From Macrostomum hystrix (lineage: Eukaryota > Animalia > Platyhelminthes): 64,000 nt of DNA. The notes below the pieces were generated by a model. The model worked only from the letters and a program-made list of their open reading frames with translations, was not told the origin of the DNA and ran no database searches. The DNA is taken from the NCBI GenBank assembly GCA_950097015.1, contig CATNEN010000002.1:5890001-5954000 (forward strand), in the 5' to 3' direction. Of the stretch, positions 11,630 through 57,130 are shown piece after piece. Made by a program: the position numbers and the translations under genes. Each line of letters begins with the position of its first letter. Within the stretch, counting starts at the first letter, position 1.

Positions 11630-11935
11630 ATTCCTACCCTCTCCTTCTCTCTCCTTCCCTTCCCTTCCCCTCTCTACCCCTGTCTTCCCCTGTCTTAACC
11701 TCTCTACCCCTGTCTTCCCCTCTCTACCCCTGTCTTCCCCTCTCTACCCCTCTCTACCCCAGTCTTCCCCTGTCTTCCTCAGTCTTCCCCTGTCTTCCCC
11801 TGTCTTCCCCTGTCTTCCCCTGTCTTCCCCTGTCTCCCCCTCTCTTCTCCTCTCTACCCCTCTCTACCTCTGTCTTCCCCTCTCTCTACCCCTCTCTACC
11901 CCTGTCTTCCCCTCTCTTCCCCTCTCTTCCCCCAA
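11630..11935. repeat. CT-rich 10-bp repeat (CCCCTGTCTT/CCCCTCTCTA)n
   Basis: Direct reading; degenerate edges. Confidence 0.9.
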
Positions 11936-12825
11936 TTTTTCTCCTCCGCTTTCTTCCCTTTCTTCCCCTCTATCCCTATCTTACACTCCTGCCCCTACTT
12001 TCCTCTCATCTCCCTACGTTCTTTCTTATCCCTCCAAGCCCTCTTGTTGAATTTTATTATTAAATTAGTATATTTGATAGTTTTTTATCAACTGTATTGA
12101 CAGGTAAACATACAGATATTTCATGATTCCCTCCAGTGCTAACTGGAGTAGCCAATTAATTAACGCATTAATTAAATAGGTAAACCCAAGCACAGCGCTA
12201 GACATAATTAAACCAATTAATTTTTAATTCTAAAAAACCGAAAACAACAAAGAATTGCCGGCGACAAAAAATTAACTCCTGAGACATTGTGCCCTAAGCT
12301 GTAGTTTTGCTCAAATTTAATGAAAAATTACTGACTGACGACACACGCGCGCGCACAAAAGAAGCTTGCACAATGACAGACAAAAATAAGAAAAACAGCT
12401 CAATAAATATTCTTCTGCTTTTTATAGTTAGCTCCATATAGTTAAGAAATTCGCGAATCCAATTCTGCTTCCATTTCATTCTTCGAAGCTGTTTTAATAC
12501 GCAGCATTTGTCTGGAAGAAAGAATTAAATTATAAATATAATTGTGCCTTTTTTGAAAAAGCCCTTACAAATTAAAATCGTGACTGCTCCAGTGAGCAGT
12601 TTATCCATCTGGGCATGACAGGAAATGCGCTTTGTCGCATTAGCAGAATTAATTAATTATTTTAAATTAATTGCTTACTATGGAGCTGACCACACGGCTA
12701 ACCAACGGGCGACGGTTGAGCAGATTGCTTTTCCGATTCCATAACAAGCACGGCTGATTGTTCACAAGCCGCTGCGCTGCGGCTTGGGCCCAACAAATGC
12801 GTGTCACTGTCCGCTTCATCCGCTT

Positions 12826-39424: not shown

Positions 39425-40260
39425 AGAGATGAGAGCTCTTCTCAGGGATAGAGATGAGATACGGTGGAAGAGAGGGAGAGGGAGATGAGAGAGGGAGATG
39501 AGAGAGGGAGATGAGAGAGGGAGATGAGAGAGGGAGATGAGAGATGGATAGGTAGATGAGAGAGGGAGAGGGAGATGAGAGAGGGAGATGAGAGAGGGAG
39601 AGGGAGATGAGAGTGGGAGAGGGAGATAAGAGTGGGAGAGGGAGATGAGAGTGGGAGAGGGAGATGAGAGAGGGAGAGGGAGATGAGAGAGGTAGATGAG
39701 AGAGGGAGAGGGAGATGAGAGTGGGAGAGGGAGATGAGAGAGGGAGATGAGAGATGGAGAGGTAGATGAGAGAGGGAGAGGGAGATGAGAGTGGGAGAGG
39801 AAGATAAGAGTGGGAGAGGGAGATGAGAGAGGTAGATGAGAGAGGGAGAGGGAGATGAGAGTGGGAGAGGGAGATGAGAGAGGGAGAGGGAGATGAGAGT
39901 GGGAGAGGGAGATGGGAGATGGAGAGGTAGATGAGAGTGGGAGAGGGAGATGAGAGTGGGAGAGGGAGATGAGAGAGGGAGATGAGAGATGGAGAGGTAG
40001 ATGAGAGAGGGAGAGGGAGATGAGAGAGGGAGAGGGAGATGAGAGTGGGAGAGGGAGATAAGAGTGGGAGAGGGAGATGAGAGTGGGAGAGGGATGAGAG
40101 AGGGAGATGAGAGAGGGATGGTGAGATGAGAGAAGACATGAGGGGAGAGGGAGATGAGAGAGGGATGGTGAGATGAGACAGGAGATGAGTGAGGGAGAGG
40201 TAGATGAGAGAGGGAGAGGGAGATGGGAGATGGAGATGAAGGGTGAGATAAGAGTGGAAG
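39425..40260. repeat. GA-rich 15/21-bp minisatellite (GAGATGAGAGAGGGA[GAGGGA])n
   Basis: Tandem units. Confidence 0.93.
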
Positions 40261-40698
40261 GGTGAGATCAGATAGGATGGGAGCGGAGTTTTAGTGAGTG
40301 AGATGACGGATGTGATGATAGGCAGAAGAATTGGTAAGTGTTACAAATTGATCATGAAACAAGCTGTAGAGATTTTTTCTGCAGTTGAAGCTATGACTGT
40401 AGCTCCTGTTGCTAAATATTGAAAGCGATGTCTACAGCAGTTTATTTTAGATGTCAAACTAATCATTTTACTATTAATAATAAAACGAAATAGGGTGAGT
40501 CGAACTTAAGAACAGACGGAATTAAAGAATTTAAACCACTAGCCAAAATAGTGTGTTTAAATCTATCTGATCAATTTAGACTTCAACTGGTTTGAGAATG
40601 GCTTGGGATTACCTTACTATTCATTTGAAGAATAATATGTTTGAAAACTTCATTCGTTATTAAAATATTTCTCGCATTTGTTTCTGGGTGAGGCTAGC

Positions 40699-40875
40699 TC
40701 AACACTGCACAGGTGTACTTGTCCCAGGCTCCGCGGCTGCTCTGTCCTGCTCAGAGGCTGACTGCCTCATCAGGGTCGTCTCCATCTCGCGGCGCAGCTC
40801 CTGATCCTCGATGATCTTCTGCTCAGCTGAGACTACTCGACGCTTCCGGCCCAGCAAGTTGTTGTTCTCATCGTC
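40699..40875 (-). CDS. nan: Nanchung/OCR-type TRPV channel, exon 12 (terminal)
   Basis: Acceptor CCCCAG|GAC, phase 0; DDENNNLLGRKRR...PVQC* (TGA at 40699). Weak homology support. Confidence 0.7.
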   Translation of the reverse strand, partial: DDENNNLLGRKRRVVSAEQKIIEDQELRREMETTLMRQSASEQDRAAAEPGTSTPVQC

Positions 40876-40897
40876 CTGGGGAGCGGTAGGAGAGGTT

Positions 40898-41410
40898 GCA
40901 CCTGAGATACACCTGATATACACCTGAGATGCACCTGAGATACACCTGATATACACCGGATATACACCTGAGATGCACCTGAGATACACCTGATATACAC
41001 CTGATATACAACTGAGATACACCTGAGATACACCTGATATACACCTGAGATGCACCTGAGATACACCTGATATACACCTGAGATACACCTGAGATACACC
41101 TGAGATATACGAGATACATCCTGACATACACAGAACCATCCCGACAGACACAGAACCATCCTGACAGACAAAGAACCATCCTGACAGACAAAGAACCATC
41201 CTGACAGACACAGAACCATCCTGACAGACACAGAACCATCCTGACAGACACAGAACCATCCTGACAGACACATAAACCATCCTGACAGACACAGAACCAT
41301 CCTGACAGACACAGAACCATCCTGACAGACACAGAACCATCCTGACAGACACAGAACCATCCTGACAGACACAGAACCATCCTGACAGACACAGAACCAT
41401 CCTGACAGAT
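40898..41410. repeat. Two abutting arrays: 11-bp (CACCTGAGATA)n, then 20-bp (CAGACACAGAACCATCCTGA)n
   Basis: Tandem units; the switch is at about 41112. Confidence 0.95.
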
Positions 41411-42379
41411 ACAGAGACGGATAGAATTGAGACACGAAAATGGTGGCTGAAATTCGTGACGCAATTACCAAGATGTTACTATGCTCAATTGCTGCCCCAG
41501 GACAATATCCCAATACCAAAGTGTCAATTGTACTCCGAGGTAAAAAAAATTCATTTCCGATTTGTTCTGGATGAATATGACAGAATTATTTAGGCAGAAT
41601 GATATTTTCGTGACAAAGGCGGGTTACTCAAAAGACACATTAATTGCAGGGCATCACCCGGCTGTGGAAATTACCCTAAAAATATCTTCTCACCCCCCTA
41701 TAAAGCCGCTACCACACGAAGCGTCAATCAAAAGCGACTCGGTTAATAATTATTTCTTGACAGGCCAAATGCTCACGAGTTCATAGTAAACTGACACTGA
41801 TAATTATCTGCTTCTGCTGCTGAAGCCTCACCTGGAGCAGTAATGCCAGTTGGACTGCCACAGGTGCTCAGAAACAGACTCATGTTTGTGTTGTTTTATC
41901 AGGATTTTGAAGAGTCCGATTTTGAACACGAAAAGTTGTAAATCACATCTCAAGTTCGAGCATTGCATGTCGCAAGTTGAGACGACTCAAACTTTGTGTC
42001 AGACAGAATCAGAAAACTATTTTTAGACAGAGTATGAAACTGATAAAATATCATGAAAATGATCCATAAAATAAAGCATCATGAAGCACTGATAAAAGCC
42101 CCAGCTACACTACTGAAAAGAAACCAATTGAGTAGCATGACGAGAGCATAGCACAGATGATAAATTTCACTGTTCGAATGCTGATAACGCCACGCTATTT
42201 AACTGGTGTAGGCCTGAAATCTAACACGGTTATTAAAATTTCTTGTCAAGGTCAATTTAAGCAAACACGAGCAAAAAAGGACTCTGACCTTTGTCCCTGG
42301 TACCGACTGGCTCTGAACATTTCTATGCTCAATCTCTTGCAAGCAAGTTTCAAGTCAAACATTAATTGTATAGTGGACA

Positions 42380-42590
42380 CCTGAGACAGAACAGCTGAGA
42401 CAGAACAGCTGAGACAGAACAGCTGAGACACAATGCCATGAGACAGAACAGCTGAGACAGAACAGCTGAGACACAATGCCATGAGACAGAACAGCTGAGA
42501 CAGAACAGCTGAGACAGAACAGCTGAGACAGAACAGCTGAGACAGAACAGCTGAGACAGAACACCTGAGACAGAACAGCTGAGACAGAAT
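42380..42590. repeat. 14-bp minisatellite (GAGACAGAACAGCT)n
   Basis: Tandem units. Confidence 0.95.
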
Positions 42591-42646
42591 GCCATAATTC
42601 AGAACAGCGGTGAGAGGCAGGGGCTTCAGCTGTTCAGCGAACTCAC

Positions 42647-42772
42647 CGCACTCTTCCAGCGCACAACCAGAGCTCGGCGACCGTCCTGCAGCAGCTGTGA
42701 GTAGCTCTCTTGGTGCGCCTGGCACTCCTGCCTGGTGAAAGTCTGCTCAACCACCAGCAGGATGCGAGCCCA
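42647..42772 (-). CDS. nan: TRPV exon 11 (second half of the TRP helix)
   Basis: CTGCAG|TGG...GCG|GTGAGT. WARILLVVEQ...YSQLLQDGRRALVVRW resembles Nanchung WARIVLVVER...YSQPMSDGRRALVLR as recalled. Confidence 0.92.
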
Positions 42773-42945
42773 CTGCAGGTAAATTCAGTTTCAGAGAATA
42801 ATGTATTGCTCAGAATTGTCAGGTAACTTTGTCTGCGAATTCAGTAAATCACAATAAGCGGGCCATTCAAAATAAAAATGAACACTTAATAACCAACAGC
42901 ACTTGAAACCACGATTGGCGTTCCGGTCTAGAGAATATGTTTTTT

Positions 42946-42951
42946 TTTATT
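42946..42951 (-). terminator. Candidate poly(A) signal of DHCR24
   Basis: AATAAA within AAAATAAAAAAAAA about 265 bp after the DHCR24 stop and about 170 bp before the TRPV exon 11 acceptor. Confidence 0.45.
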
Positions 42952-43214
42952 TTGCAGAGGAAATCAACAAACAGTCTATATTAGACTTACTTATTTGAGT
43001 TTATCTATTAGTACGGCCAAGAGTAAAGCTTATAACAATTCTAACATGCAAAGTGTACTTAAAAAACAATCATAGAAAAATTTAAACACCACTTTGCCAA
43101 CAACTGCTAACGCTTTATAGTATCACTATATCACCAGTTTAGTTCAAACGACTTGGATGCTTGCAATTAAGAAAATTGTTTTTTTGCTGGACAATGGCCT
43201 AACCACAATGTTCC

Positions 43215-44750
43215 TCAGTCTCGCACGCTTCTATTGATCTTGTCGTAGACGCGCGGAAATGCGTCGTTGGTTCGAGTCAGGTTTTCCCTCAGCTTGTTGT
43301 ATAGTCGGTGATCGAACATCGCCTCGAACTCGTCCGTCGTCATGAATGTGTCGGCGTAGAGCATCTGGAAGCCGCGGACCTGGCGCACGTAGGCCTCAAG
43401 GCGGCGGGTTGTGGCCTCCGCCTTGTACTGCGCGTTCTTGGGCGCTCCGTACGCGCCGATGTCAACGTACATCTGGGCCTGGTCGTCCCGCGGGCGGAGC
43501 ATGCCGGGGTTGTCGGGCAGGTAGAACGGGCACAGCCACAGCGGGTACATGTTGATCTCGCGGTGGAACACGCGAACGGCCTCGGCTAACTCAGTCATCG
43601 GCACCAGCATGTCCTGGATGATCTGGTGCGTCTCGTACATCTTCTTCACTGTCTCGCCCTGCGTCAGCTTCATCAAGGACACCTTGGGAGGCACAGCCCA
43701 GCCAAGAAGGTAGCGGAAAATCGGATGGTTGCCGAACGGCACAATGTCTTGCATCTGCCAGAAGATGCTGCGCGAGTGGCGGTGATAATAGTGCCTGGTG
43801 GGAATGAACTCCACGCCGCCGCCGGTCTTAAGAAACTTCTCCACGTGCTTGAAAAACCACGGCTTCCAGTAGTCGCCGATGCGGTTGATCTTGTCCGGGT
43901 CGGCCTGGTTGGTGGACTTGCCCACCATGACAACTCCGGTCTCAGCTGAGTAGACCAGGCCCTCCACAAAGTCGTTTTCCTCGCGTTTTGCCGATTCAAC
44001 TGCGAAAGTCTTGGACAGTTCGTCCAGCGAGTGGCAGGGGATGTACGTGAGCCGGACGAACGAGTGCGCCGGGATCAGGCGGATGGTGGCGGACACCAGG
44101 AAGCCCAGGGTGCCGTAGGACCAGGGCACGGCGTAGAACAGGTCGGAGTTCTCCTTGGCGCTGCAGGTGACGAGGCTGCCATCGGCTAGAACCAGCTCGT
44201 AGCTCTCGCAGATGTGCTGAAAGAGGCCGTGCACGTGCGACGAAGTCTCCACGCCGGTGCCCATGACGAGGCCGCCGACGGTGAGGTCGTCCAGCTCGGG
44301 CACGATGGGGATGGTCCAGCCGAGAGGCAGCAGGGTGGCCGTCAGCTGCCCCATCGACACCATCGGCTCGCAGCGCACCGTCCTGGAGTTCGGATTGACC
44401 TCCAGGATGTCGATCAGGTTGACGTTGACATTGTAGTGCGTCTTCTTGTACTTTCCCCGACGGAAGGACATGTTCTGCCAGCCCGGCCTGGCGGTGCAGA
44501 GTTTCTGCTGGCTGCCGCTCTTGGCCCAGGCCGCGATCTGGCGCTGGACGTCCTTCACCCGGGCGTCGTGCTGGCGCGGCGCGCTGCGCAGCCTGAAGAC
44601 GATCTTGTTGCGCACGTAGAAGAAGGCATCGTAGAGTAGCGACAGCGGCAGCAGGAACAGCAGAACGAACACCCAGCGGTAGTTGACCAGGATGTAGGCG
44701 AACAGCTTCTCAGACATTGGCGCATTCTCAAGACCAGCCATCGGGTCCAT
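43215..44750 (-). CDS. DHCR24: Delta(24)-sterol reductase, intronless, nested in TRPV intron 10
   Basis: Uninterrupted 511-aa ORF with RWVFVLLFLLPLS, TARPGW, GKYKKTH, VPELDDLTVGGLVMGTGVETSSH, YELVLADG and LFYAVPWSYGTLGFL, all DHCR24/DWF1 FAD-oxidoreductase motifs. Confidence 0.97.
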   Translation of the reverse strand: MDPMAGLENAPMSEKLFAYILVNYRWVFVLLFLLPLSLLYDAFFYVRNKIVFRLRSAPRQHDARVKDVQRQIAAWAKSGSQQKLCTARPGWQNMSFRRGKYKKTHYNVNVNLIDILEVNPNSRTVRCEPMVSMGQLTATLLPLGWTIPIVPELDDLTVGGLVMGTGVETSSHVHGLFQHICESYELVLADGSLVTCSAKENSDLFYAVPWSYGTLGFLVSATIRLIPAHSFVRLTYIPCHSLDELSKTFAVESAKREENDFVEGLVYSAETGVVMVGKSTNQADPDKINRIGDYWKPWFFKHVEKFLKTGGGVEFIPTRHYYHRHSRSIFWQMQDIVPFGNHPIFRYLLGWAVPPKVSLMKLTQGETVKKMYETHQIIQDMLVPMTELAEAVRVFHREINMYPLWLCPFYLPDNPGMLRPRDDQAQMYVDIGAYGAPKNAQYKAEATTRRLEAYVRQVRGFQMLYADTFMTTDEFEAMFDHRLYNKLRENLTRTNDAFPRVYDKINRSVRD

Positions 44751-44835
44751 GGCTGTGTGTTTTTGCTCACTGTTTGTCTTTGTTTAGCAATCAAAGCTTT
44801 CTGGTTCTGCAAACGTCAATTTTTCTTCACAATCG

Positions 44836-44842
44836 CTTTATA
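44836..44842 (-). promoter_or_regulatory. Candidate TATA box for DHCR24
   Basis: TATAAAG about 30 bp upstream of TTTGCAG|AACC and about 90 bp upstream of the ATG. Confidence 0.35.
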
Positions 44843-45126
44843 AGCCAGTCAAAAGTAGCAGAACAAGGCCAAGGCACACATTGCTTCCTATGCAGAGTGT
44901 GGGGCCGAGTGGTACGATTTTTTAAAGTCCATTGTACTGACACTATCTCTCCACACTTTCCATTCAGCCATCTGTACGCTAATATAGACACCCGCCTCAT
45001 GGAGAATGTACGCGAGTAATGTCCAGCCCAGTTCAAGAGTGACCAGTTGTACTCTCTGACAAATAATAATTTTTACACTCATTCCGTCTACTGAAAGTAG
45101 AAATGCAAGAACATTGCAGTGCTCAC

Positions 45127-45243
45127 CTGACGCAGCCATTCTTTCTGAGTCTCGTTGACAGCCTCGAATGTGTGACCCATCATGGCGATGAGCATGTTGA
45201 CCAGCAGCAGAGTGACCAGGATCATGTAGACCACAAACAGGAA
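45127..45243 (-). CDS. nan: TRPV exon 10 (S6 and start of the TRP helix)
   Basis: CACAG|TTC...CAG|GTGAGC; [39 protein letters not shown]. Confidence 0.95.
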
Positions 45244-45325
45244 CTGTGAGTTTTCAAAGAGTTCATAAAAATTCATACATAAGACCGATTTTTCTTGAGT
45301 TGTCGTCGTCTATGGCAATTCCTAC

Positions 45326-45471
45326 CTTCCCCATGCTGCTGTGTGCCGAGCAGTCAAACTGCTCGTAGATCTCGGCGAACTCTCCCAGCGACATGATGAA
45401 CATCCCCATCAGGGCCTCGCCGGGGTCGTGAAAGATGCTGGCGTCGACGCGGCGGAAGACGATAAACATCG
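45326..45471 (-). CDS. nan: TRPV exon 9 (pore region)
   Basis: CGCCAG|CG...AAG|GTAGGA; MFIVFRR...ALMGMFIMSLGEFAEIYEQF. Confidence 0.93.
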
Positions 45472-45524
45472 CTGGCGGTGTGAAGGGTTTGATGTGGTTT
45501 TGACGCTTGTTGAAACGCTCCCAG

Positions 45525-45795
45525 TCTTTTGATTGGCTAGAGGAATAACACTGGGCTCCCCAAAGAAACATTCTGTACTCTGATTGGCTGGAGGTATGCA
45601 ATGTGACTCTCAAATGTGTTTCCCGTGCTCTGATTGGATGGAGGAATAAAGCGTGACTCTTACATGTACACTCTGAATTGACCTCTGATTGGCTGGAAGA
45701 ATATACCAAAACTTTCCTATATGTTTTCCGTGTTCCGATTGGATGGAGGAACAAAACGTGGCTATTCAATGTACACTCTGCATTCTGATTGGTTC
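45525..45795 (-). promoter_or_regulatory. Six phased CCAAT/Y-box motifs in TRPV intron 8
   Basis: ATTGG at 45532, 45583, 45633, 45688, 45738 and 45788, mostly in a CTGATTGG[C/A/T] context. Confidence 0.5.
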
Positions 45796-45848
45796 AATTC
45801 ACGCTAATGTACATCCGATGTGAGACACTCGGCCCTCAGTTTGCTCAC

Positions 45849-46110
45849 CCTGCGAGAAGCCCATCATGAAGATGATGTAGATGGTGCAGAAGCGCAGCAG
45901 ATCGCCGACCACCATCCTGTAGATCATCAGCACGAAGGGGCCGACAATTTTAAAGCCGCGACAGAAGAATAGAAAGTACGGCGCCGTGAACAGGATGGCA
46001 AACACGGCGATGTAGTCTTCGACGTCGGAGACACAGGCAGCGCGACAGGGCACCATGGCAACCACGAGGATGCAGGACGTCTGGTACAGACAGCGCATTG
46101 GCGTGGCTTT
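45849..46110 (-). CDS. nan: TRPV exon 8 (S3-S5)
   Basis: GAGCAG|AAA...CAG G|GTGAG; TAPYFLFFCRGFKIVGPFVLMIYRMVVGDLLRF is a Nanchung/OCR hallmark. Confidence 0.96.
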
Positions 46111-46231
46111 CTGCTCGGAATGGATCGAAACAGATTCTTCCTCACTTAGTCTCGTTTCTACGCGGGTACGTTATTATTATATACTCCTTATAGTTTGCTC
46201 CCCAAATCCTCGACACAGACCATCCACTCAC

Positions 46232-46339
46232 CAGCATCATGACGTAAATTCGAATGCCCTGGTAGTAGATGTCTCGACAAACGAAGCATAAATTTCCTGT
46301 TGCCATGACTACCACGACGCACTCACAGACGAGACGGAG
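46232..46339 (-). CDS. nan: TRPV exon 7 (S2)
   Basis: GTTCAG|CTC...CTG|GTGAGT; LRLVCECVVVVMATGNLCFVCRDIYYQG. Confidence 0.9.
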
Positions 46340-46404
46340 CTGAACAGGGAGATCAAAGCGGGATTTTAAATACATTTATAATAATTTCTCGTAATAGAAG
46401 TGAG

Positions 46405-47005
46405 ATCTAATCCCTCAGTTTCTAATCCCTCACGATCCCACAGGCTGCAATCCCTCAGGGTCTAATCCCTCAGGGCCTAATCCCTCAGTATCTAATCCCT
46501 CAGGGCCTAATACCTCAGGATCTAATCCCTCAGATCTAATCCCTCAGATCTAATCCCTCAGATCCCTCAGGATCTAATCCCTCAGATCCCTCAGGATCTA
46601 ATCCCTCAGATCCCTCAGGATCTAATCCCTCAGGATCTAATCCCTCAGATCGCTCAGAATCTAATCCATCAGGATCTAATGCCTCCCGGCCTAATCCCTC
46701 AGGATCTAATCCCTAAGATCTAATCCCTCAGATCGCTCAGAATCTAATCCTTCAGGATCTAATCCTTCAGGATCTAATCCCTCAGGATCTAATTCCTCAG
46801 GATCTAATCCTTCAGGATCTGATCCCTCAGGATCTAATCCCTCAGGATCTAATCCCTAAGATCTAATCCCTCAGATCGCTCAGAATCTAATCCTTCAGGA
46901 TCTAATCCTTCAGGATCTAATCCCTCAGGATCTAATTCCTCAGGATCTAATCCTTCAGGATCTGATCCCTCAGGATCTAATCCCTCAGGGCTAAATCCCT
47001 CAGGT
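46405..47005. repeat. 14/15-bp minisatellite (TCTAATCCCTCAGGA)n, TRPV intron 6
   Basis: Tandem units. Confidence 0.95.
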
Positions 47006-47022
47006 TCTCAGGCAGCGCTCAC

Positions 47023-47218
47023 GTAGCTCTCCCAGTCAGGTGTGGCCAGCAGGTAGCACTTGTTCTTCACTTGTATCTGGGTGGTGGTGAAGCTGCCGTT
47101 GCCCAAAGACACGTTCAGCTCTCGAGTTGTGGGGTAGCGGTCAGTTCCAGGCCGCAGCAAGAACACGGTCAGGAAGAACACGAAGTAGGCAGCGAAAGAG
47201 AAGAACATGCGGAAGAAT
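47023..47218 (-). CDS. nan: TRPV exon 6 (S1 and loop)
   Basis: ACCGCAG|A TTC...TAC|GTGAGC; RFFRMFFSFAAYFVFFLTVFLLRPG. Confidence 0.93.
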
Positions 47219-47259
47219 CTGCGGTTTAAATGAAGGAATGGGGACTTTTGTTCATTTTT

Positions 47260-48900
47260 ATAGCGGATTTCTTGTTCTTGGAGCGGATTTCATTTCTGGG
47301 AGCGGATTTCTGGTACTGGGAGCGGATTTTTTGTTCTGGTAGCGGCTTTTTTGTTTTTGGAGCGGATTTCTTGTTCTGGGAGCGGATTTCTGGTCTTGGG
47401 AGCGGATTTCTTGTTCTGGGAGCGGATTTCTTATTCTGGGAGCGAATTTCTTGTTCTGGGAGCGGATTTCTTCTTCTGGGAGCGGATTTCTGGTTTTGGG
47501 AGCAGATTTCTAGTCTTGGGAGCGGATTTCTGGTCCGGGAGCGGATTTCTGGTCCGGGAGCGGATTTCTGGTACTGGGAGCGGATTTCTGGTACTGGGAG
47601 CGGGTTTCTGGTTCTGGGAGCGGATTTCTGGTACTGGGAGCGGATTTCTGGTTCTGGGAGCGGATTTCTGGTACTGGGAGCGGATTTTCTTGTTCTGGGA
47701 GCGGATTTCTGGTCTTGGAAGCGGATTTCTTGTTCTGGGAGCGGAATTATTGTTCTGGGAGCGGATTTCTTGTTCTGAGAGCGGATTTCTGGTACTGGGA
47801 GCCGATTTTTTGTCTTGGAAGCGGATTTCTGGTTCTCGGAGCGGATTTCTGGTACTGGGAGCGGATTTCTGGTACTGGGAGCCGATTTTTTGTTCTGGGA
47901 GCGGATTTCTGGTACTGGGAGCGGATTTCTGGTACTGGGAGCGGATTTTTTGTTCTGGGAGCGGCTTTTTTGTTTTTGGAGCGGATTTCTGGTCTTGGAA
48001 GCGGATTTCTGGTTCTAGGAGCGGAATCATTCTTCTGGGAGCGGATTTCTGGTTCTAGGAGCGGATTTCGTCTTCTGGGAGCGGATTTCTGGTCTTGGGA
48101 GCAGATTTCTAGTCTTGGGAGCGGATTTCTGGTTCTGGGAGCGGAAATAGTTGTTATGGGAGCGGATTTCTGGTCCGGGAGCGGATTTCTGGTACCGGGA
48201 GCGGATTTCTGGTTCTGGGAGCGGATTTCTTGTTCTGGAGCGGATTTCTGGTACTGGGAGCGGATTTCTGGTACTGGGAGCGGATTTTTTGTTCTGGGAG
48301 CGGCTTTTTTGTTTTTGGAGCGGATTTCTTGTTCTGGGAGCGGATTTCTGGTCTTGGGAGCGGATTTCTTGTTCTGGGAGCGGATTTCTTATTCTGGGAG
48401 CGAATTTCTTGTTCTGGGAGCGGATTTCTTCTTCTGGGAGCGGATTTCTGGTTTTGGGAGCAGATTTCTAGTCTTGGGAGCGGATTTCTGGTTCTGGGAG
48501 CGGATTTCTTGTTCTGGAGCGGATTTCTGGTACTGGGAGCGGATTTCTGGTACTGGGAGCGGATTTTTTGTTCTGGTAGCGGCTTTTTTGTTTTTGGAGC
48601 GGATTTCTTGTTCTGGGAGCGGATTTCTGGTCTTGGGAGCGGATTTCTTGTTCTGGGAGCGGATTTCTTATTCTGGGAGCGAATTTCTTGTTCTGGGAGC
48701 GGATTTCTTCTTCTGGGAGCGGATTTCTGGTTTTGGGAGCAGATTTCTAGTCTTGGGAGCGGATTTCTGGTCCGGGAGCGGATTTCTGGTCCGGGAGCGG
48801 ATTTCTGGTACCGGGAGCGGATTTCTGGTTCTGGGAGCGGATTTCTTGTTCTGGAGCGGATTTCTGGTACTGGGAGTGGATATCATGATCAGTAAGCGGA
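47260..48900. repeat. 20-bp minisatellite (GGGAGCGGATTTCTGGTTCT)n filling TRPV intron 5
   Basis: Tandem units with internal block duplications (47342, 48301, 48580). Confidence 0.97.
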
Positions 48901-48961
48901 TTTCATGATCAGGGAGGGGATTTCATAATCAGGTATCGAATTTTATTGCAGAAGTGCTCAC

Positions 48962-49044
48962 CTTCGGCGCACATAGGTTTCCCATTTTCGTTCCAGTAGG
49001 CGGACCACAACACCGTCCAGCATGTTCAGGTGCTCAATCTTGGA
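48962..49044 (-). CDS. nan: TRPV exon 5
   Basis: TTTCAG|TCC...AG|GTGAGC; SKIEHLNMLDGVVVRLLERKWETYVRR. Not in the ORF track. Confidence 0.93.
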
Positions 49045-49134
49045 CTGAAAGCAAGAAATTTGTTTATTGGGTTGAAATCGGAGTTGAAATCAGAACCACG
49101 CTCGTATTTTCCTTTCCATTCCTTCTTCCATTCG

Positions 49135-49430
49135 GATCTTAGGGATTTCCATTGAGATCTAAGGGATTTTAATTGGTATCCATGGGATTTCCATTGGGAT
49201 CTAAAGGATTTCCAATATGATCTAAATTATTTCCATTGGGATGTAAGGGATTTCAGTTGGGATCTAAAGAGATTTCCGTTGGGATCTAAGGGATTCTCAC
49301 TGGGATATAAAGGATTTATATTGGGATCCAAGGGATTTCCATTGGGATCTAAAGGATTTCGATTGGGATCTAACGGAAACCATTGGGATCCAAGGGATTT
49401 CCAATATTATCCAAGGGATTTTCATTGGGA
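49135..49430. repeat. Degenerate 21-bp minisatellite (GGGATTTCCATTGGGATCTAA)n, TRPV intron 4
   Basis: Tandem units. Confidence 0.9.
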
Positions 49431-49744
49431 CTGTAACACACTAAAAGTGGTGAACGAACCTCGCGCTGGCAGACCGAGACCGGTTTCTGGCTTGTTTGCC
49501 TTCGTCAGTCATTCATAGCCACACGCCGTCCTCTCCCACCACTCTTAGTGTGGACAGAAGTCTCTTTTAAGCTTGCCATTTTTATGGCGATATTTTTTTG
49601 TGTTATGTGAGAGTTTTGCAGCCAAGTCTTTGCTTTTCTACTGTTGTCAGTAGTCTGAATTGTATCTCTCACAGGGACGATATGTATTTCGATTAGGATC
49701 TTTAATTGGTTTTGGAGAGGTTTCCATTGCGAACTAGTACTCAC

Positions 49745-49894
49745 CCCAAAGGCTATGTAGATCAGGGAAGAGTCCTTGTTGATGGAGCCGTCATGTCGGA
49801 TGGTGTCCAGTTCCGTCAAGGGGTGAGCCACACACATCACCTCACTGTAGCGCCAGCGGACCTCGCGATCGAGCATGAGGATCAGGTTGTGCAT
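49745..49894 (-). CDS. nan: TRPV exon 4
   Basis: GACCAG|ATG...GGG|GTGAGT; LDREVRWRYSEVMCVAHPLTELDTI...INKDSSL. Confidence 0.94.
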
Positions 49895-49984
49895 CTGGTC
49901 AATGCGTTTCAATATTTTTTAGCACTAACAACTCTACCGCAAGTAATAAATCAGAATTTTAATTTTTACTCCAAAGCTTAAAAA

Positions 49985-50395
49985 TTAATCTCACACATTC
50001 CTATACCAATCTCACCCATTCCTGTAACAATCTCACCCATTCCTATACCAATCTCACCCATTCCTGTAACAATCTCACCCATTCCTATAACAATCTCACC
50101 CATTCCTATAACAATCTCACCCATTCCTATAACAATCTCACCCATTCCTATAACAATCTCACCCATTCCTATAACAATCTCACCCATTCCTATAACAATC
50201 TCACCCATTCCTATAACAATCTCACCCATTCCTATAACAATCTCACCCATTCCTATAACAATCTCACCCATTCCTATAACAATCTCACCCATTCCTATTA
50301 CAATCTCACCCATTCCTATAACAATCTCACCCATTCCTATAACAATCTCACCCATTCCTATAACAATCTCACCCATTCCTATAACAATCTCACCC
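49985..50395. repeat. 21-bp minisatellite (TCTCACCCATTCCTATAACAA)n, TRPV intron 3
   Basis: Tandem units. Confidence 0.96.
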
Positions 50396-50576
50396 TGTTG
50401 CCCCATCATCTCGCCCTACTATCACATTATCTCACCCTATTTTCTCATCATCTCACCCTGTTGTCTCATCATCTCACTCTATTAACTCATCATCTCACCG
50501 TACTGTCTCATCATCCCCATCTATCTTCTCATTCTCATCCCTTAAAAGCAAGCTCAACACATTCCGAGATTCGAAC

Positions 50577-50853
50577 CTCCAACCGTCCGAGCTTGGCAGC
50601 CAGGGTGAGTGGCGTGAGGCCCTGGTTGTTGCGAATGTCCAGTCGGGCCTTCTTATTCACCAGCAGAATGAAGAGCTTCTGGGCCACCTTCAGGTTCATG
50701 TTGGGCTGGTGAATGACCAGGATGTGCAGCACTGTGTTGCCATTGGTGTCCTGACGGTTGGGATCCGCGTTTCTCGACAACAGCAGCCGCACGCATTGCT
50801 CCTGACCGCAGCAGGCGGCGAAGCTCAGCGGGTACTCGCCCCAGTACACGTGC
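50577..50853 (-). CDS. nan: TRPV exon 3 (ankyrin repeats)
   Basis: GTCCAG|G CAC...GAG|GTTCGA; VYWGEYPLSFAAC...QDTNGNTVLHILV...NNQGLTPLTLAAKLG. Confidence 0.96.
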
Positions 50854-51034
50854 CTGGACAAGGACAGGTTAGATTGCCCCCCACAGCAGTCAGTACTCCC
50901 GAATTCAATCAGAAAGTATCACTTTCTTTGACTACTCGTAGGTTACTAGAATATCACGTTCGATTCGTTTTAAGAACCACCAGGAATACATTTTTATCCC
51001 CTGGAACATATAATCCCCTCCGTGTCCCCTTAAA

Positions 51035-51325
51035 ATATCCTCAGAATCAATCACCTCAGAATCTATCCCCACAGAATCAATCCCCTCAGAATATATCCCT
51101 CAGAATCAATCCCCTCAGAATCTATCACCTCAGAATATATCCCCTCAGAATCTATCACCTCAGAATCTATCCCCTCAGAAAATATCCCATCAGAATCTAT
51201 CCCCTCAGAATCTATCCCCTCAGAATCTATACCCTCAGAATCTATCCCATCAGAATCTATCCCCTCAGAATCTATCCCCTCAGAATCCATCCCCTCAGAA
51301 TCTATCCCCTCAAAATCTATCCCAT
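51035..51325. repeat. 15-bp minisatellite (TCTATCCCCTCAGAA)n, TRPV intron 2
   Basis: Tandem units. Confidence 0.95.
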
Positions 51326-51355
51326 TCTTAAGCATCGCTGAGTGCTGATGCTCAC

Positions 51356-52022
51356 CCCTCATAGTTGGTCTCGACCTTGAGATCCAGGTACTCATCGTCC
51401 AGGTAGCTGATTCTCTGCTCCTTCTGATCCTCGCAGCCGAAGAACGCCCCGAAGCAGCGCTGGTGAATGTTGGCTCCATGGTCCAGCAGGAACTTCACCA
51501 TGACGGGGTCCTCGTTGGAGATGGCGATGTGCAACACGGCCTCGCCGTAGTACACATCCAGCAGGTAGATGTCGTTGATGACCTTCGGGTAGAACTCGAT
51601 GATGCGCCTGGCAACGTCCATGTGGATTGGCGTGGCATTCAGGAAGCAGAGGTGCAGGCAGGTCTCGCCCACGGCTCCCCGCTGCTCGAGATCCCAGCAG
51701 ACGTCGCGATATCCGTTGTCAACCTCCTCGTTGCCGCCGCCGCTGACGCAGGTGCCGTCGGCGTCCGTGTCGGCGTGAACAATGTCCAGCATGGGGTAGA
51801 CATTGTTGCTAGGCGTGGCTCGCTTGCCTTTCCGGCCGGCTGGCGATTTCGCTAACGGCGGTGGACCGTCCCGAGTTCGAAACTTGACCAGCTCGGAGAC
51901 GTGCACTTTTTTGCCTTCTCCGTCGTTATAGAGAAACAACCTCATCTCCTGCTTGATGCGCTCGTCCAGACGGCGATAATCCTCAGCTGTCTGACATTTC
52001 TTGGCCGCCTCGATGAGCTCGC
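51356..52022 (-). CDS. nan: TRPV exon 2 (N-terminus and ankyrin repeats)
   Basis: TTCGCAG|GC...GG|GTGAG; RGAVGETCLHLC, YYGEAVLHIAISNEDPVMVKFLL, RCFGAFFGCEDQK, TNYEG. Confidence 0.96.
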
Positions 52023-52389
52023 CTGCGAATCCGCGGGATTTTTCCATTCTTTACTATTAACTTTGTATCGTTGGAGGATTTTTCAAAGTTTCCGCTGAGT
52101 TTTCTAGGAAACTATCTTGACTTTGGTTCTGAATTCGTATTAATGAAAAAAATTTTCTTGTCTACCTGTGGTTTGTCTGTACGGGGGCGGATTTTGTGCA
52201 CAAAGAGCGGATTCTATTTGAATTGTGGATTTTTAGGAAATAGAGGGATTTTCTGTAAAAGGAAGGATTTTTTAAAGGAGGTGGATTTTCTGAAAAGGTG
52301 GATTTTCCAAGAAACTGGACTTTTAAAAGAGGTGGATTACATGTAAATCGGCAGTTGTACATAGTGTGAATTTTCTAAAAACAAAGACA

Positions 52390-53350
52390 ATTTTCTAAGA
52401 AGGCCGATTCTCTGAGAAGTGCGGATTTCCTTAGAATGGCGGATTTTCTTAGAATGGCGGATTTTCTTAGAAGAGTGGATTTTCTTAGAAAGATGGAATT
52501 TCCTAAGAATGGTGGATTATCTTAGAAGGGTGGATTTTCTTAGAAGAGTGGATTTTCCTTAGATGGGTGCATTTTCTTAGCAAGGCGGACTTTTCTTAAG
52601 AAGGGTGGATTTTCTTAGAAAGGCGGATTTTCCTAAGAAGGGTGGGTTTTCTTAGAAGGTTCTTGGAATGGAGGATTTTCTTAGAAGAGTGGATTTTTTC
52701 TTAGAAGGGCGGGTTTTCTCAGAAACGCGGATGTTTCATAGAAAGGCGGATTTTCTTGGAAGCGCGGATTTTCCTTAGAAGGGTGCATTTTCTTAGAATG
52801 GTGGATTTTCTTAGAAGGAAGGATTTTCTTAGAAGTAAGGATTTTCTTAGAAACGCGGATTTCCTAAGAAGGGCAGATTTTCTTAGAAGGGCGGATTTTC
52901 TTAGAAGGGCGGATTTTCTTAGAAGGGCGGATTTTCCTTAGAAGGGTGCATTTTCTTAGAAAGGCGGATTTTCTTAGAAGGGCGGATTTTTCCTAAGAAT
53001 GGCGGATTTTCTTAGAAGGAAGGATTTTCTTAGAAGGAAGGATTTTCTTAGAAGTAAGGATTTTCTTAGAAACGCGGATTTCCTAAGAAGGGCAGATTTT
53101 CTTAGAAGGGCGGATTTTCTTAGAAGGGCGGATTTTCTTAGAAGGGCGGATTTTCCTTAGAAGGGTGCATTTTCTTAGAAAGGCGGATTTTCTTAGAAGG
53201 GCGGATTTTCCTAAGAATGGCGGATTTTCTTAGAAGGAAGGATTTTCTTAAAAGCGCGGATTTTCTAAGAAGGGCAGATTTTCTTAGACGTGCGGTATTT
53301 CTTAGAAGGGTGGATTTTCTTAGAAACGCGGATGTTCTGAGAAGGGCGGA
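52390..53350. repeat. 18-bp minisatellite (GGCGGATTTTCTTAGAAG)n, TRPV intron 1
   Basis: Tandem units. Confidence 0.94.
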
Positions 53351-54024
53351 TTTTTAAAGAGAACGGAACATTTTCATTTGACGGCTATATTTTCTGAAAC
53401 AAATGCTTTGCTTAGAATGGATGGATTCTCTGTAAAGAAGCAAATATTCTTGAATAACGCTGATATTCTGTAAGGAGCCAAATTTCTACTCGTATCATAT
53501 GAAGTCTATCTGAATTTATGTCAAAGATATTTATAAATAAATATCATTGTGGTCTTACTAGAAAATATTTCGAAATTAGAATTTCATAGAAATAGAGATT
53601 ATTTTGGGATTTAATTTCAGCAAATCGATGATTTAACAGCTTGATATTTAAAAGTGCTAACAACTCCAACAACTTAGCCTGAACGTTGGCAAAAAATACA
53701 TCCGCTTTGTAGGGCCCACTATCTGAGCTGCTTTAAACATCCCTCCAGATTTTCAAAATCAGCTTTGGAATGAGCTCACGTTCTCACTCAGCGATAAGGA
53801 TAAGGGATTATTGGGATTTGAGCTGGCTCTGTTGACATTGGCGACGGCAAACACGGGTCTAGCCGCGAGTCTCTGTTTACTTGGCCAACCTGAGCACTAG
53901 TGCTCAAACAGCTGAGCTGCGGAGTAGTTGAGATCAGAGCAGCTTAGTTGGCCTGGAACTCAACAGCTTTGCACCTGCGATTTACACCTGTGCTTCAGCA
54001 CCAGGTTAATGTTCAGATTAGATG

Positions 54025-54690
54025 GATCAGGGAAGGCGATTAGCTCACCTACCTGAGGGATCAGGGGAAGGCGATTAGCTCACCTACCTGAGGGATCAGG
54101 GAACGGGATTAGCTTGGCTACCTGAGGGATTAGGGGAAGGGGATTAGCTTGGCTACCTGAGGGATCAGGGGAATGGGATTAGCTCACCTACCTGAGAGAA
54201 CAGGGGTATTGGATTAGCTTGGCTACCTGACGGATCAGGGGAAGGGGCTGAAAGATCAGGGAACGGGATTAGCTTGGCTACCTGAGGGATCAGGGGAATG
54301 CGATTAGCTTGGCTACCTGAGGGATCAGGGGAATGGGATTAGCTTAGCTACCTGAGGGATCAGGGGAAGGGGATTAGCTCACCTACCTGAGGGATCAGGA
54401 GAAGGGAATTAGCTTGGCTACCTGAAGGATCAGGGGCATGGGATTAGCTTAGCTACCTGAGGGATCAGGGGCATGGGATTAGCTTAGCTACCTGAGGGAT
54501 CAGGGGAATGGGATTAGCTCAGCTACCTGAGGGATCAGGGGCATGGGATTAGCTTAGCTACCTGAGGGATCAGGGGAATGGGATTAGCTTAGCTACCTGA
54601 GGGATCAGGGAAAGGGGCTGAAAGATCAGGGAACGGGATTAGCTTGGCTACCTGAGGGATCAGGGAAAGGGGATTAGCTTAGCCACCTGA
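54025..54690. repeat. 35-bp minisatellite (GGGATTAGCTTAGCTACCTGAGGGATCAGGGGAAT)n, TRPV intron 1
   Basis: Tandem units. Confidence 0.95.
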
Positions 54691-55152
54691 TGCAATAAGG
54701 CAATGGAAGGGGATTTAACAGTCAGATCGTGAGATGGCAGGTATTCAAAGGCCAGGGAAGCGAGCTGTCAATTAAATGTCTCTCAATTCCAACCCCAAAA
54801 TGTGCCACTTGAACCGATAATCCAGTCGAGAAGTTCATCAGTTTCAGCCTCACAGCCAATTAGCTCTGCCTGCCTGCGTTCTAAAAAGTGCAGCTTCAAA
54901 AAACACCTACAAAATCCGTCTCTGCAACTCTATGCGAAAAATTTTAAACTGAAAAGAAAGATGGGAGAGCTGAAGAACTCAAAACTTGCCATTAGTTCCC
55001 GTTGAGCTCAAAAACCTATCCGTGCTCAGACAATGCGCCGGAAACCTGACTGACTGCTGCTGCAGAGTCTGACCGACTGTAGATCAATGTTTGGTTGCCT
55101 ATGGCAACCAACTAACTGGTTTACTGAGGCTGTGCTGTTAGCCTGCTTTAGG

Positions 55153-55475
55153 GAATAGAAAATAGTAGAATAGAATATAATAGAATAGAAAAGAATAGAA
55201 TAGAATAGAATAGAATAGAATAGAATAGAATATAATAGAATAGAAGAGAATAGTATAGAATAGAATAGTATAGAATAGAATATAATAGAATAGAATAGAA
55301 TAGAATAGAATAGAATTGAAAAGAATAGAAGAGTAGAGAATAGAATAGAATAGAATAGAATTGAATAGAATTGAAGAGAATAGAAGAGAAGAGAATAGAA
55401 TAGAATAGAATAGAATAGAATAGAACAGAATAAAATAGAATAGAAGAGAAGAGAATAGAATAGAGTAATAGAATG
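55153..55475. repeat. (AATAG)n microsatellite
   Basis: Direct reading. Confidence 0.97.
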
Positions 55476-55953
55476 TAAGCAAATACGAGTACTATTAGAG
55501 ACTACAATAAAAATTCGTCCTATTTTCAACTTGAACAACCATGGGATAATCGCCAATAGTAAAACTGCAACTCAACATATGTTTCCCGTATTTGAAGCAT
55601 ATTCAGGGGATATTGCTTTGAACATTTTCAAAGCAATCAAGCGAATAGAACAATTATCATATGAATTGGAAAATACGGAACGAACGAAATAATATATCTA
55701 ATAGAAATTATTAAATAGAAGACATGCTACACAAGGGATGGAATATATAATATATAAAATAGAATAGACAAACTAAATAATAGGGAATTAAATATAAGAA
55801 AATTTATGGAATAGGATATAGACGGATTGGAAAATTATTAAAATAGTTTAATTTAAACCCGAGACCCCAATTGTGGCGGGAGTAAACCGAATTGAGTAGA
55901 AATCAAAGTTAAAGGTTCTGGGACTTCGAAACAAAGCAACCGAGACAATTCAC

Positions 55954-56050
55954 CTCCTCCGGTCAGATCAACGAATCGATAGGCTTTGAAGGCCTTGTTG
56001 TCCGTCTGTTCCTTCACCGAGGACTGGATGTTCGGCTGGTTGTTGCCCAT
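55954..56050 (-). CDS. nan: TRPV exon 1 (start)
   Basis: ATG at 56050. MGNNQPNIQSSVKEQTDNKAFKAYRFVDLTGG parallels the recalled Nanchung N-terminus MGNTESNVTSGVKKQ...LYKFVNLKGGG. Donor G|GTGAAT, phase 1, joins exon 2. The 12 exons total 2406 nt (801 aa). Confidence 0.9.
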
Positions 56051-56634
56051 CCTGCTGGCTGGTCTGCTCAAAAATCTCCACCCAGATTCCTGTCGAGTGA
56101 TGAAGGGAAGTTACTAGATTCCCTAGACTGTTTTCTAATTTATCTAGGGAAAATGAGAGAAGGAAGGAGACTGAAGGAAGAGCTTGCGAGAACCTATGGG
56201 CGGTCACCTGGTTGCCATAGCAACAGCTTTGTGTTTTACGCGCGCGAGAAAGAAAGACAAGGGAGAGGAGAGAGAAAAAAACTGCAACTGGCTTGCATTG
56301 GGGAGTTTTGGGAAGAATCCCAAACTCAAACTCAAACTGCGTGAGGGAGCCTTAAAAGGTAAAAAAAATGCTTTACCGCTGCCCACTGCTGCTGCTGCTA
56401 CTGATGCAGGTCCACTTTTCATTTTTCAGAAATCGATCAACTTCCCTTATGCAACTCATTCAAGAAGTGGGCGATAAATTATTGATGAATAAAAATTGCC
56501 TTCCACAGAAGTGACGCTGTGTATTTTGGGGAAGTGTACGCTTGTATGAGAGGGAACATTTTCTCAACATTCTTTTCTAAATGTTTGATTGCTCATTGGA
56601 GTGGTATTTATTGTTAGACTTCACTAGTCATCTC

Positions 56635-57130
56635 CATAATTAGCCTTCCCATTATCCCCCCAGTCCATCATTAGCCTTCCTATTCTCCCCCCACTCCATC
56701 ATTAGCCTTCCCATTCTCCCCCACTCCATCATTAGCTTTCCCATTCTCCCCCAGTCCATCATTAGCTTTCCCATTCTCCCCCAGTCCATCATTAGCCTTC
56801 CCATTCTCCCCCCACTCCATCATTAGCCTTCCCATTCTCCACCAGTCCATCATTAGCCTTCCCATTCTCCCCCACTCCATCATTAGCTTTCCCATTCTCC
56901 CCCAGTCCATCATTAGCCTTCCCATTCTCCCCCAGTCGATCATTAGCCTTCCCATTCTCCCCCCACTCCATCATTAGCTTTCCCATTCTCCCCCAGTCCA
57001 TCATTAGCCTTCCCATTCTCCCCCAGTCGATCATTAGCCTTCCTATTCTCCCCCCACTCCATCATTAGCTTACCCATTCTCCCCCAGTCCATCATTAGCT
57101 TTCCCATTCTCCCCCAGTCCATCATTAGCC
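56635..57130. repeat. 30/31-bp minisatellite (CCATTCTCCCCCAGTCCATCATTAGCCTTC)n
   Basis: Tandem units. Confidence 0.96.

Follow-up and report, generated by a model that had tools for sequence, protein, structure and literature searches.

Within the stretch of DNA analysed here (the window: 64,000 nt of Macrostomum hystrix, assembly GCA_950097015.1, contig CATNEN010000002.1, positions 5,890,001 to 5,954,000 of the forward strand), a complete gene for the sterol reductase DHCR24 is situated inside intron 10 of a gene for a TRPV channel of the Nanchung type, on the same (minus) strand as its host. Public RNA contigs join the channel exons on both sides of the nested gene and contain an unspliced DHCR24 transcript that lies wholly within the intron, and the same arrangement is found at three loci of Macrostomum lignano. 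The features of the locus are compiled in Table 1; all positions refer to the window.

Table 1. Features of the TRPV/DHCR24 locus (positions in the window)
Feature	Position	Strand	Basis and remarks
TRPV exons 1-9 (approximate coding pieces)	45326-56050	minus	tblastn with P0127, P0132, and P0121; RNA joints; M. lignano orthologous exons. Pieces: 56050-55934, 52023-51355, 50852-50574, 49897-49745, 49032-48961, 47187-47020, 46372-46232, 46110-45849, 45471-45326
TRPV exon 10	45243-45127	minus	S6 helix and first half of the TRP box (...EWLRQ), then GTGAGC; RNA joints, tblastn
Host intron 10	42773-45126	minus	2354 nt, phase 0, GT..AG; RNA joint 42772/45127
Unspliced RNA contig over the exon-10 donor into the intron	44957-45149	minus	X5 record 7, 193 nt, depth 3.2
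TATAAA, candidate core promoter element	44837-44842	minus	87-92 nt upstream of the DHCR24 ATG; predicted
DHCR24 mRNA by contigs	42909-44828	minus	~1.9 kb, unspliced, colinear, wholly within the intron; four runs
DHCR24 coding sequence	43215-44750	minus	single exon, 511 aa, ATG to stop, stop codon included
AATAAA poly(A) signal	42951-42946	minus	sole canonical signal between the DHCR24 stop and the host acceptor
TRPV exon 11	42772-42647	minus	WARILLVVEQ...RWKSA, CTGCAG before; X6 contig 10 (42646-42772)
TRPV last coding exon 12	40875-40699	minus	DDENNNLL...STPVQC, then stop; X6 contig end and M. lignano P0273 C-terminus
TRPV-intron minisatellites	40899-41415, 42377-42589, 46404-47008, 47262-48924, 49126-49430		
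TRPV-intron minisatellites, continued	49987-50532, 51039-51323, 52390-53354, 54024-54672, 55153-55464		

The host gene comprises 12 coding exons between 56050 and 40699, which were mapped by tblastn with the full-length TRPV proteins of Mytilus (P0127, 794 aa) and of an ant (P0132, 911 aa) and with a fragment from M. lignano (P0121). The window exons align along the entire Mytilus and ant proteins, including S5-S6 and the sequence EWLRQWARIL that is divided between exons 10 and 11. Since the homologs are uninterrupted across this point (EWFRQWAKVV in Mytilus, EWQRQWARIV in the ant), intron 10 is placed in phase 0 between the Q and W codons of the TRP box. Concerning the subfamily, the call is taken from search scores of the M. 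lignano ortholog P0275, in which ankyrin families are present, against solved structures: it obtains 579 bits (E 1e-172) on the Nanchung structure 9nvo, 283 bits (4e-83) on Inactive, and 196 bits (~1e-56) on TRPV6, and because the first of these scores is far higher than the other two, the host is classed as a Nanchung-type TRPV. All remaining TRPV introns of more than 500 nt contain at least one minisatellite array, with differing units of 5-35 nt, whereas no tandem array was found in 42600-46400 by Tandem Repeats Finder (TRF). This absence is not a conserved property, since the host intron of M. lignano possesses a minisatellite between AATAAA and exon 11 (unit of ~23 nt; ~11930-12140 of locus L002). 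No match of a structured RNA to Rfam was obtained in 40000-57000.

The open reading frame (ORF) of the nested gene (1536 nt) takes up 65.3% of the 2354 nt of the host intron. Its residues 64-197 match the Pfam family FAD_binding_4, a PCMH-type FAD-binding domain (E 3.3e-14, 53 bits, cutoff 26.4), and over at least 96% of the length it is 59-68% identical to named animal delta(24)-sterol reductases of molluscs, a brachiopod, nemerteans, echinoderms, and vertebrates; other FAD-linked oxidases in the PDB match it in the FAD domain alone, with E 1e-11 or weaker. Its 90%-identity cluster holds three M. lignano DHCR24 entries, and every named M. lignano DHCR24 protein in that cluster is the nested gene. 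A hydrophobic N-terminal stretch, FAYILVNYRWVFVLLFLLPLSLLY, a candidate membrane anchor, was read by eye from the ORF. Judged by these matches, the nested ORF is DHCR24 (delta(24)-sterol reductase), and it would be the working DHCR24 of Macrostomum worms. In insects, DHCR24 serves the conversion of dietary sterols (PMC8471071); by analogy, the Macrostomum enzyme would likely turn delta-24 sterols (e.g., desmosterol), taken up with or derived from the diet, into cholesterol.

The original prediction had read from the letters of the window an intact 511-aa DHCR24 ORF filling about 65% of a 2.35-kb TRPV intron on the same strand, with the host exons ending in EWLRQ (45127) and resuming with WARIL (42772) inside the TRP-box codons, and with no minisatellite of the kind seen in most TRPV introns. 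All of this stands: the two identities are borne out by the full-length matches and by the Nanchung score, the Q/W position by the continuity of the homologs, the exon boundaries by the exon sequences, that continuity and an RNA joint, and the missing minisatellite by the TRF result.

RNA contigs of four public runs (X1, X3, X5, and X6) from two studies were placed on 42600-46400. The contigs of X5 and X6 are identical in sequence to the window, and since they skip 42773-45126, 45244-45325, 45472-45848, and 46111-46231, they are derived from RNA. The corresponding joints are 42772/45127, 45243/45326, 45471/45849, and 46110/46232; GT..AG ends on the minus strand were recorded for the three joints that were tabulated from the X5 and X6 contigs. 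The exon 10-exon 11 joint expected from the original prediction (42772/45127, skipping 2354 nt) is present in two runs, X5 and X6. One X6 contig of 522 nt (contig 10) links exons 10, 11, and 12; the 291 nt that it carries beyond exon 11 end in an exact match to 40845-40874, and the last coding exon was therefore placed at 40875-40699. The host pre-mRNA is spliced cleanly across the entire nested gene. By the geometry of the locus, as had been pointed out beforehand, no full-length channel transcript can be made unless the DHCR24 poly(A) signal is read through, and because the exon joints are seen in RNA, host polymerases do pass it.

DHCR24 itself is transcribed as an unspliced mRNA of ~1.9 kb that ends within the intron and spans 82% of it. 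Its contigs extend over 42940-44790 in X5, over 42909-44737 in X6, over 42922-44813 in X1 (followed by 15 nt which are a variant of 44814-44828), and over 42928-43874 and 44417-44826 in X3. In all four runs, the ends of the contigs are no more than an approximation of those of the mRNA. Four contig 3' ends are situated 6-37 nt downstream of the AATAAA at 42951-42946; in M. lignano, AATAAA occurs at a similar distance from the DHCR24 stop, i.e., 265-290 nt past the stop across both species. Contig depth, which is a poor and only indicative measure in runs that were selected for containing this stretch, amounts to ~200-245 for DHCR24 versus 2-7 for the channel exons of the same runs. As the upstream channel exons are far rarer, channel transcripts cannot be the source from which most of the DHCR24 RNA is derived. 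No joint between any TRPV exon and the 5' region of DHCR24 is present in the contigs of the four runs; a cis-spliced TRPV-DHCR24 chimera was rejected on this ground and because exon 10 joined to 44806 would be out of frame with the DHCR24 ATG (56 nt).

Some sequence variation was encountered in the same material. X1 and X3 differ from the window at ~0.5% of sites and look like population or sister-taxon variants. X3, which is labelled as another organism than X1, lacks 47 nt of the DHCR24 3' untranslated region (UTR; 42968-43014) and contains an inserted TTTA close to the poly(A) signal (42943).

At three loci of M. lignano (L002-L004, assembly GCA_002269645.1), where synteny had been proposed as a check, the same-strand nesting recurs: TRPV exons 1-10 lie upstream and exon 11 lies downstream of DHCR24. 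Since the layout is the same at all three loci, the nest is not a chance pattern. The M. lignano DHCR24 is again a single exon of 1536 nt and is 93% identical to that of the window; exon 10 ends 449 nt before its ATG, and exon 11 starts 723-794 nt after its stop. Between the window and M. lignano, synonymous divergence (dS) is 0.79-0.83 for DHCR24 and 0.84 for seven TRPV exons, and the ratio of nonsynonymous to synonymous divergence (omega) is 0.05 for DHCR24 and 0.03 for TRPV; the GC content at third codon positions (GC3) is 0.87 in DHCR24 and 0.80 in the TRPV exons, and dS among the M. lignano DHCR24 copies is 0.03. Because of these values, DHCR24 and its host are both regarded as functional and native. 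Both genes are, by these comparisons, under strong purifying selection, and the nest is older than the split between the window species and M. lignano and older than the duplication of the M. lignano copies. A foreign origin or contamination of DHCR24 was likewise considered; it is ruled out by the GC3 of the two genes, the host-like dS, and the occurrence in the same intron in another assembly.

The non-coding parts of intron 10 are largely diverged between the two species, save for short blocks (a TATA-like motif, AATCG.ACCACTC, and AATAAA). The M. lignano TATA-like motif, TATATAAG, is found ~70 nt upstream of its DHCR24 ATG. The block AATCG.ACCACTC.G (44900-44921), ~170 nt upstream of the ATG and conserved with ~9800-9830 of L002 in the otherwise diverged intron, is a candidate promoter element. 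Besides these loci, a Logan contig of 1668 nt (L001, SRR28338165) contains the DHCR24 of a close relative and just the mRNA, with a dS of 0.66 to the window and of 0.87 to M. lignano; it is consistent with the same unspliced DHCR24 transcript in another species.

The public M. lignano protein models of the two genes are both affected by the nest. The 'DHCR24' of 610 aa in UniProt (A0A1I8HD04, here P0273) is a chimera, in which a frameshifted C-terminus is read into the 3' UTR and is followed by TRPV exons 11-12, and the Nanchung model (A0A1I8HBT4, here P0275) is truncated, ending after exon 9. The nest has thus broken automated annotation, and work on flatworm TRP channels or sterol metabolism that uses these models would be misled.

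Taken together, the locus is best explained as a conserved same-strand host/nested pair of two genes in Macrostomum, with DHCR24 lying in the ancient intron 10 of Nanchung, a reading to which a probability of about 0.8 can be given. The two genes would be transcribed as units independent of each other, probably in different cells and with strongly differing output, DHCR24 being made at a high and Nanchung at a low level. DHCR24 would be driven by a promoter of its own within the ~300 nt that separate the 5' splice site of the host from the start of the DHCR24 transcript, so that its RNA would start ~300 nt into the intron and, using its own AATAAA, would end ~135-165 nt before the host acceptor. 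Host polymerases would pass the nested poly(A) signal often enough for full-length channel mRNA to be made. The usual candidates for how such an internal signal is ignored are expression in separate cell types and a splicing machinery that suppresses poly(A) sites within introns.

Several observations weigh against this explanation. The X5 contig at 44957-45149 indicates that some RNA runs on from exon 10 into the intron, which implies either some host read-through or an upstream start of DHCR24. Its candidate sources are retained or nascent host RNA and host transcripts bound for the DHCR24 poly(A) site; a rare upstream DHCR24 start, for which ~1% of the DHCR24 depth would be enough, and trace DNA are further possible ones. 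Concerning the promoter, the TATAAA lies only ~14 nt upstream of the farthest contig ends (X1 and X3, 44826-44828) and is too close to be the sole determinant of the start; moreover, given the approximate nature of contig ends, the separate DHCR24 promoter is a predicted one.

Other observations concern the origin of the nest. A TRPV gene in the assembly GCA_001642005.1 contains an intron of 33 nt at the same place and in the same phase (KEWIRQ, then GTAATT...TTTAG, then WASIIL; L006:6305-6337). This assembly, which we take to be that of the orthonectid Intoshia linei, is a distant, AT-rich genome with tiny introns. Because the Q/W site is shared with it, the intron predates the nest and was already in place when DHCR24 entered it. 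The DHCR24 of Lingula consists of at least 7 coding pieces over 5 kb with unrelated, non-TRPV neighbours, and M. lignano genes average ~4.9 introns (PMC5730564). As all introns were lost and the insert exceeds the length of one mRNA only slightly, retroposition of a spliced mRNA into the pre-existing intron is somewhat favoured as the route. It is opposed by the lack of scars: neither a target-site duplication nor flanking direct repeats were found at the nest, and there is no conserved remnant of a poly(A) tract, the A-run at 42940-42950 merging with the AATAAA, lying inside the mRNA, and being absent from M. lignano. A further Logan contig (L005, DRR639838) carries an intronless DHCR24 of another organism that is 68% identical and is preceded by AT-rich sequence; no TRPV exon is present in the 1.9 kb upstream of it, a contig too short to decide the matter, and the loss of introns may accordingly be older than, or separate from, the nesting.

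Both the missing scars and L005 would suit a different origin, by gradual or recombination-mediated intron loss, with transposition or rearrangement into the intron at the DNA level. This route, which touches the origin of the nest only, is unlikely on balance: the ancestral introns, at least 6 in number, are all gone at once in a lineage with the mean intron number given above, and the insert is little more than one mRNA, with 82% of the intron transcribed and a compact 3' UTR ending at AATAAA. The loss of scars is, besides, to be expected, since the insertion is old and such traces do not survive at a dS above 0.8.

Regarding the relation of the two genes to each other, it is conceivable that the nested poly(A) site competes with the splicing of intron 10, so that either full-length Nanchung or a truncated channel is made and DHCR24 activity or sterol state sets the balance. 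The geometry makes both outcomes mutually exclusive for any one transcript, the nest is conserved in M. lignano, and in human cells, premature polyadenylation and intron retention have been described upstream of tandem nested genes (Kaer et al. 2011, PMC3192792; also PMC11694760). The unspliced contig at the exon-10 donor points in the same direction, as its depth is similar to that of the channel exons and no such contig exists for the other three introns in 42600-46400; translated, the read-through product would be ...EWLRQ plus 12 intron-encoded residues, then a stop. However, this is a single contig of low depth from one run, which nascent RNA, a rare upstream start, or trace DNA fit equally well, and no contig extends from exon 10 as far as the DHCR24 body (in X5, positions 44791-44956 are uncovered). 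Apart from the short blocks, there is little conservation in the intron flanks, nothing links the two products functionally, and the conservation of the nest is expected without any function; nested genes being hard to relocate, it is no argument for one. Such a competition is therefore improbable.

Its stronger form, in which the DHCR24 poly(A) site is a regulated intronic terminator of Nanchung that has been kept by selection for coupling, with the activity of the DHCR24 locus tuning channel dosage, is quite improbable. If true, the channel would be cut in the middle of the TRP box, and the dosage of a mechanosensory subunit would be tuned by the DHCR24 locus. The original prediction had gone in this direction in proposing a co-expression unit or switch, of which no sign was obtained: DHCR24 has transcript ends of its own, its depth is far above that of the channel exons, and neither a chimeric joint nor a spliced leader (SL) is seen. 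With respect to a coupling of sterols and channel, the evidence leans towards two independent transcription units.

DHCR24 might alternatively have no promoter of its own and be released from the channel pre-mRNA in an operon-like manner, by SL trans-splicing at the AG 44808-44807 and polyadenylation. In M. lignano, trans-splicing affects ~39% of genes, and polycistronic precursors account for ~7% of transcription units (Wudarski et al. 2017, PMC5730564), and a good acceptor-like motif, TTTGCAG, is situated at 44813-44807, 57 nt upstream of the DHCR24 ATG. Against this, the contigs of X1 and X3 are colinear through the AG up to 44826-44828, and no contig carries foreign letters at its 5' end, a negative result that applies to bulk RNA, as contigs drop minor variants and a minor trans-spliced fraction is possible. 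The acceptor is not conserved, the aligned M. lignano sequence being ATCAGCCTC, and the upstream host exons have a contig depth ~40 times lower. A release of DHCR24 by trans-splicing is accordingly very improbable, and for bulk RNA the reading of TTTGCAG as an SL acceptor or as part of a decoy exon was rejected because of the read-through in X1 and X3 and of the missing conservation. That the arrangement is an artefact of assembly or annotation, with exons belonging elsewhere or the DHCR24 segment misplaced, has a practically negligible probability, since in two runs the joint in the RNA coincides precisely with the predicted splice sites and the same order occurs in three independent M. lignano contigs of another assembly, and nothing speaks in its favour apart from the fact that public M. 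lignano models did mis-join both genes.

As to its significance, the main value of the two-gene reading lies in annotation, i.e., in the correction of the chimeric and truncated public gene models. It also provides a clean, conserved, RNA-supported nest in sense orientation, of an essential-looking enzyme gene in a short intron, and with its working transgenesis M. lignano could offer a tractable case for studying how polymerases of the host get past an active poly(A) signal inside their gene. No new kind of mechanism is opened by the nest.

Among known systems, the interference of tandem nested genes or L1 with their hosts (PMC3192792) is similar in that unspliced RNA extends from the upstream exon into the intron, which is the signature described there, whereas here it consists of a single low-depth contig in one run and no polyadenylated truncated host transcript is shown. 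With the SL-resolved polycistronic units of M. lignano (PMC5730564), the locus shares the genus, a same-strand downstream ORF within a longer primary transcript, and an acceptor-like site; it differs from them in that the DHCR24 contigs carry no SL and read through that site, and in that DHCR24 is situated inside an intron and not past the 3' end of the upstream gene. 'Orphaned' retrogenes that have replaced an intron-containing parent are matched in the intronless state as opposed to an ortholog of at least 7 exons, in strong purifying selection, in high expression, and in the location in an intron of an unrelated gene, whereas no poly(A) remnant or target-site duplication has survived here.

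The closest parallel is found in the same-strand intronless nests of Drosophila and mammals. In Drosophila, nested structures include ~10% of genes and are of opposite strand in 71% of cases (Assis 2016, PMC5174743); in D. melanogaster, same-strand inner genes are mostly intronless (71.5%), which was interpreted as selection against mis-splicing (PMC5174743). Host/nested pairs involve more than a tenth of genes in mouse and human, with orientations described as 'broadly similar' (Montibus et al. 2024, PMC11694760). The exceptional character that the original prediction ascribed to same-strand nesting was hence overstated, ~29% of Drosophila nestings being of this type. A literature search returned nothing relevant on a DHCR24-in-Nanchung pair or on DHCR24 in Macrostomum. 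The arrangement is an ordinary same-strand intronless nest and a textbook member of its class, of which the pair and the lineage have apparently not been described before. As in the Drosophila and mammalian cases, a short intronless protein-coding gene is wholly contained in a single intron of a bigger gene with several exons and shares its strand; RNA is made from both, and host splicing joins the exons on either side of the inner gene. In contrast to them, the inner gene is apparently the main DHCR24 copy of the lineage and not a young extra copy, and it fills most of a short intron, whereas inner genes usually occupy a small part of a long one.

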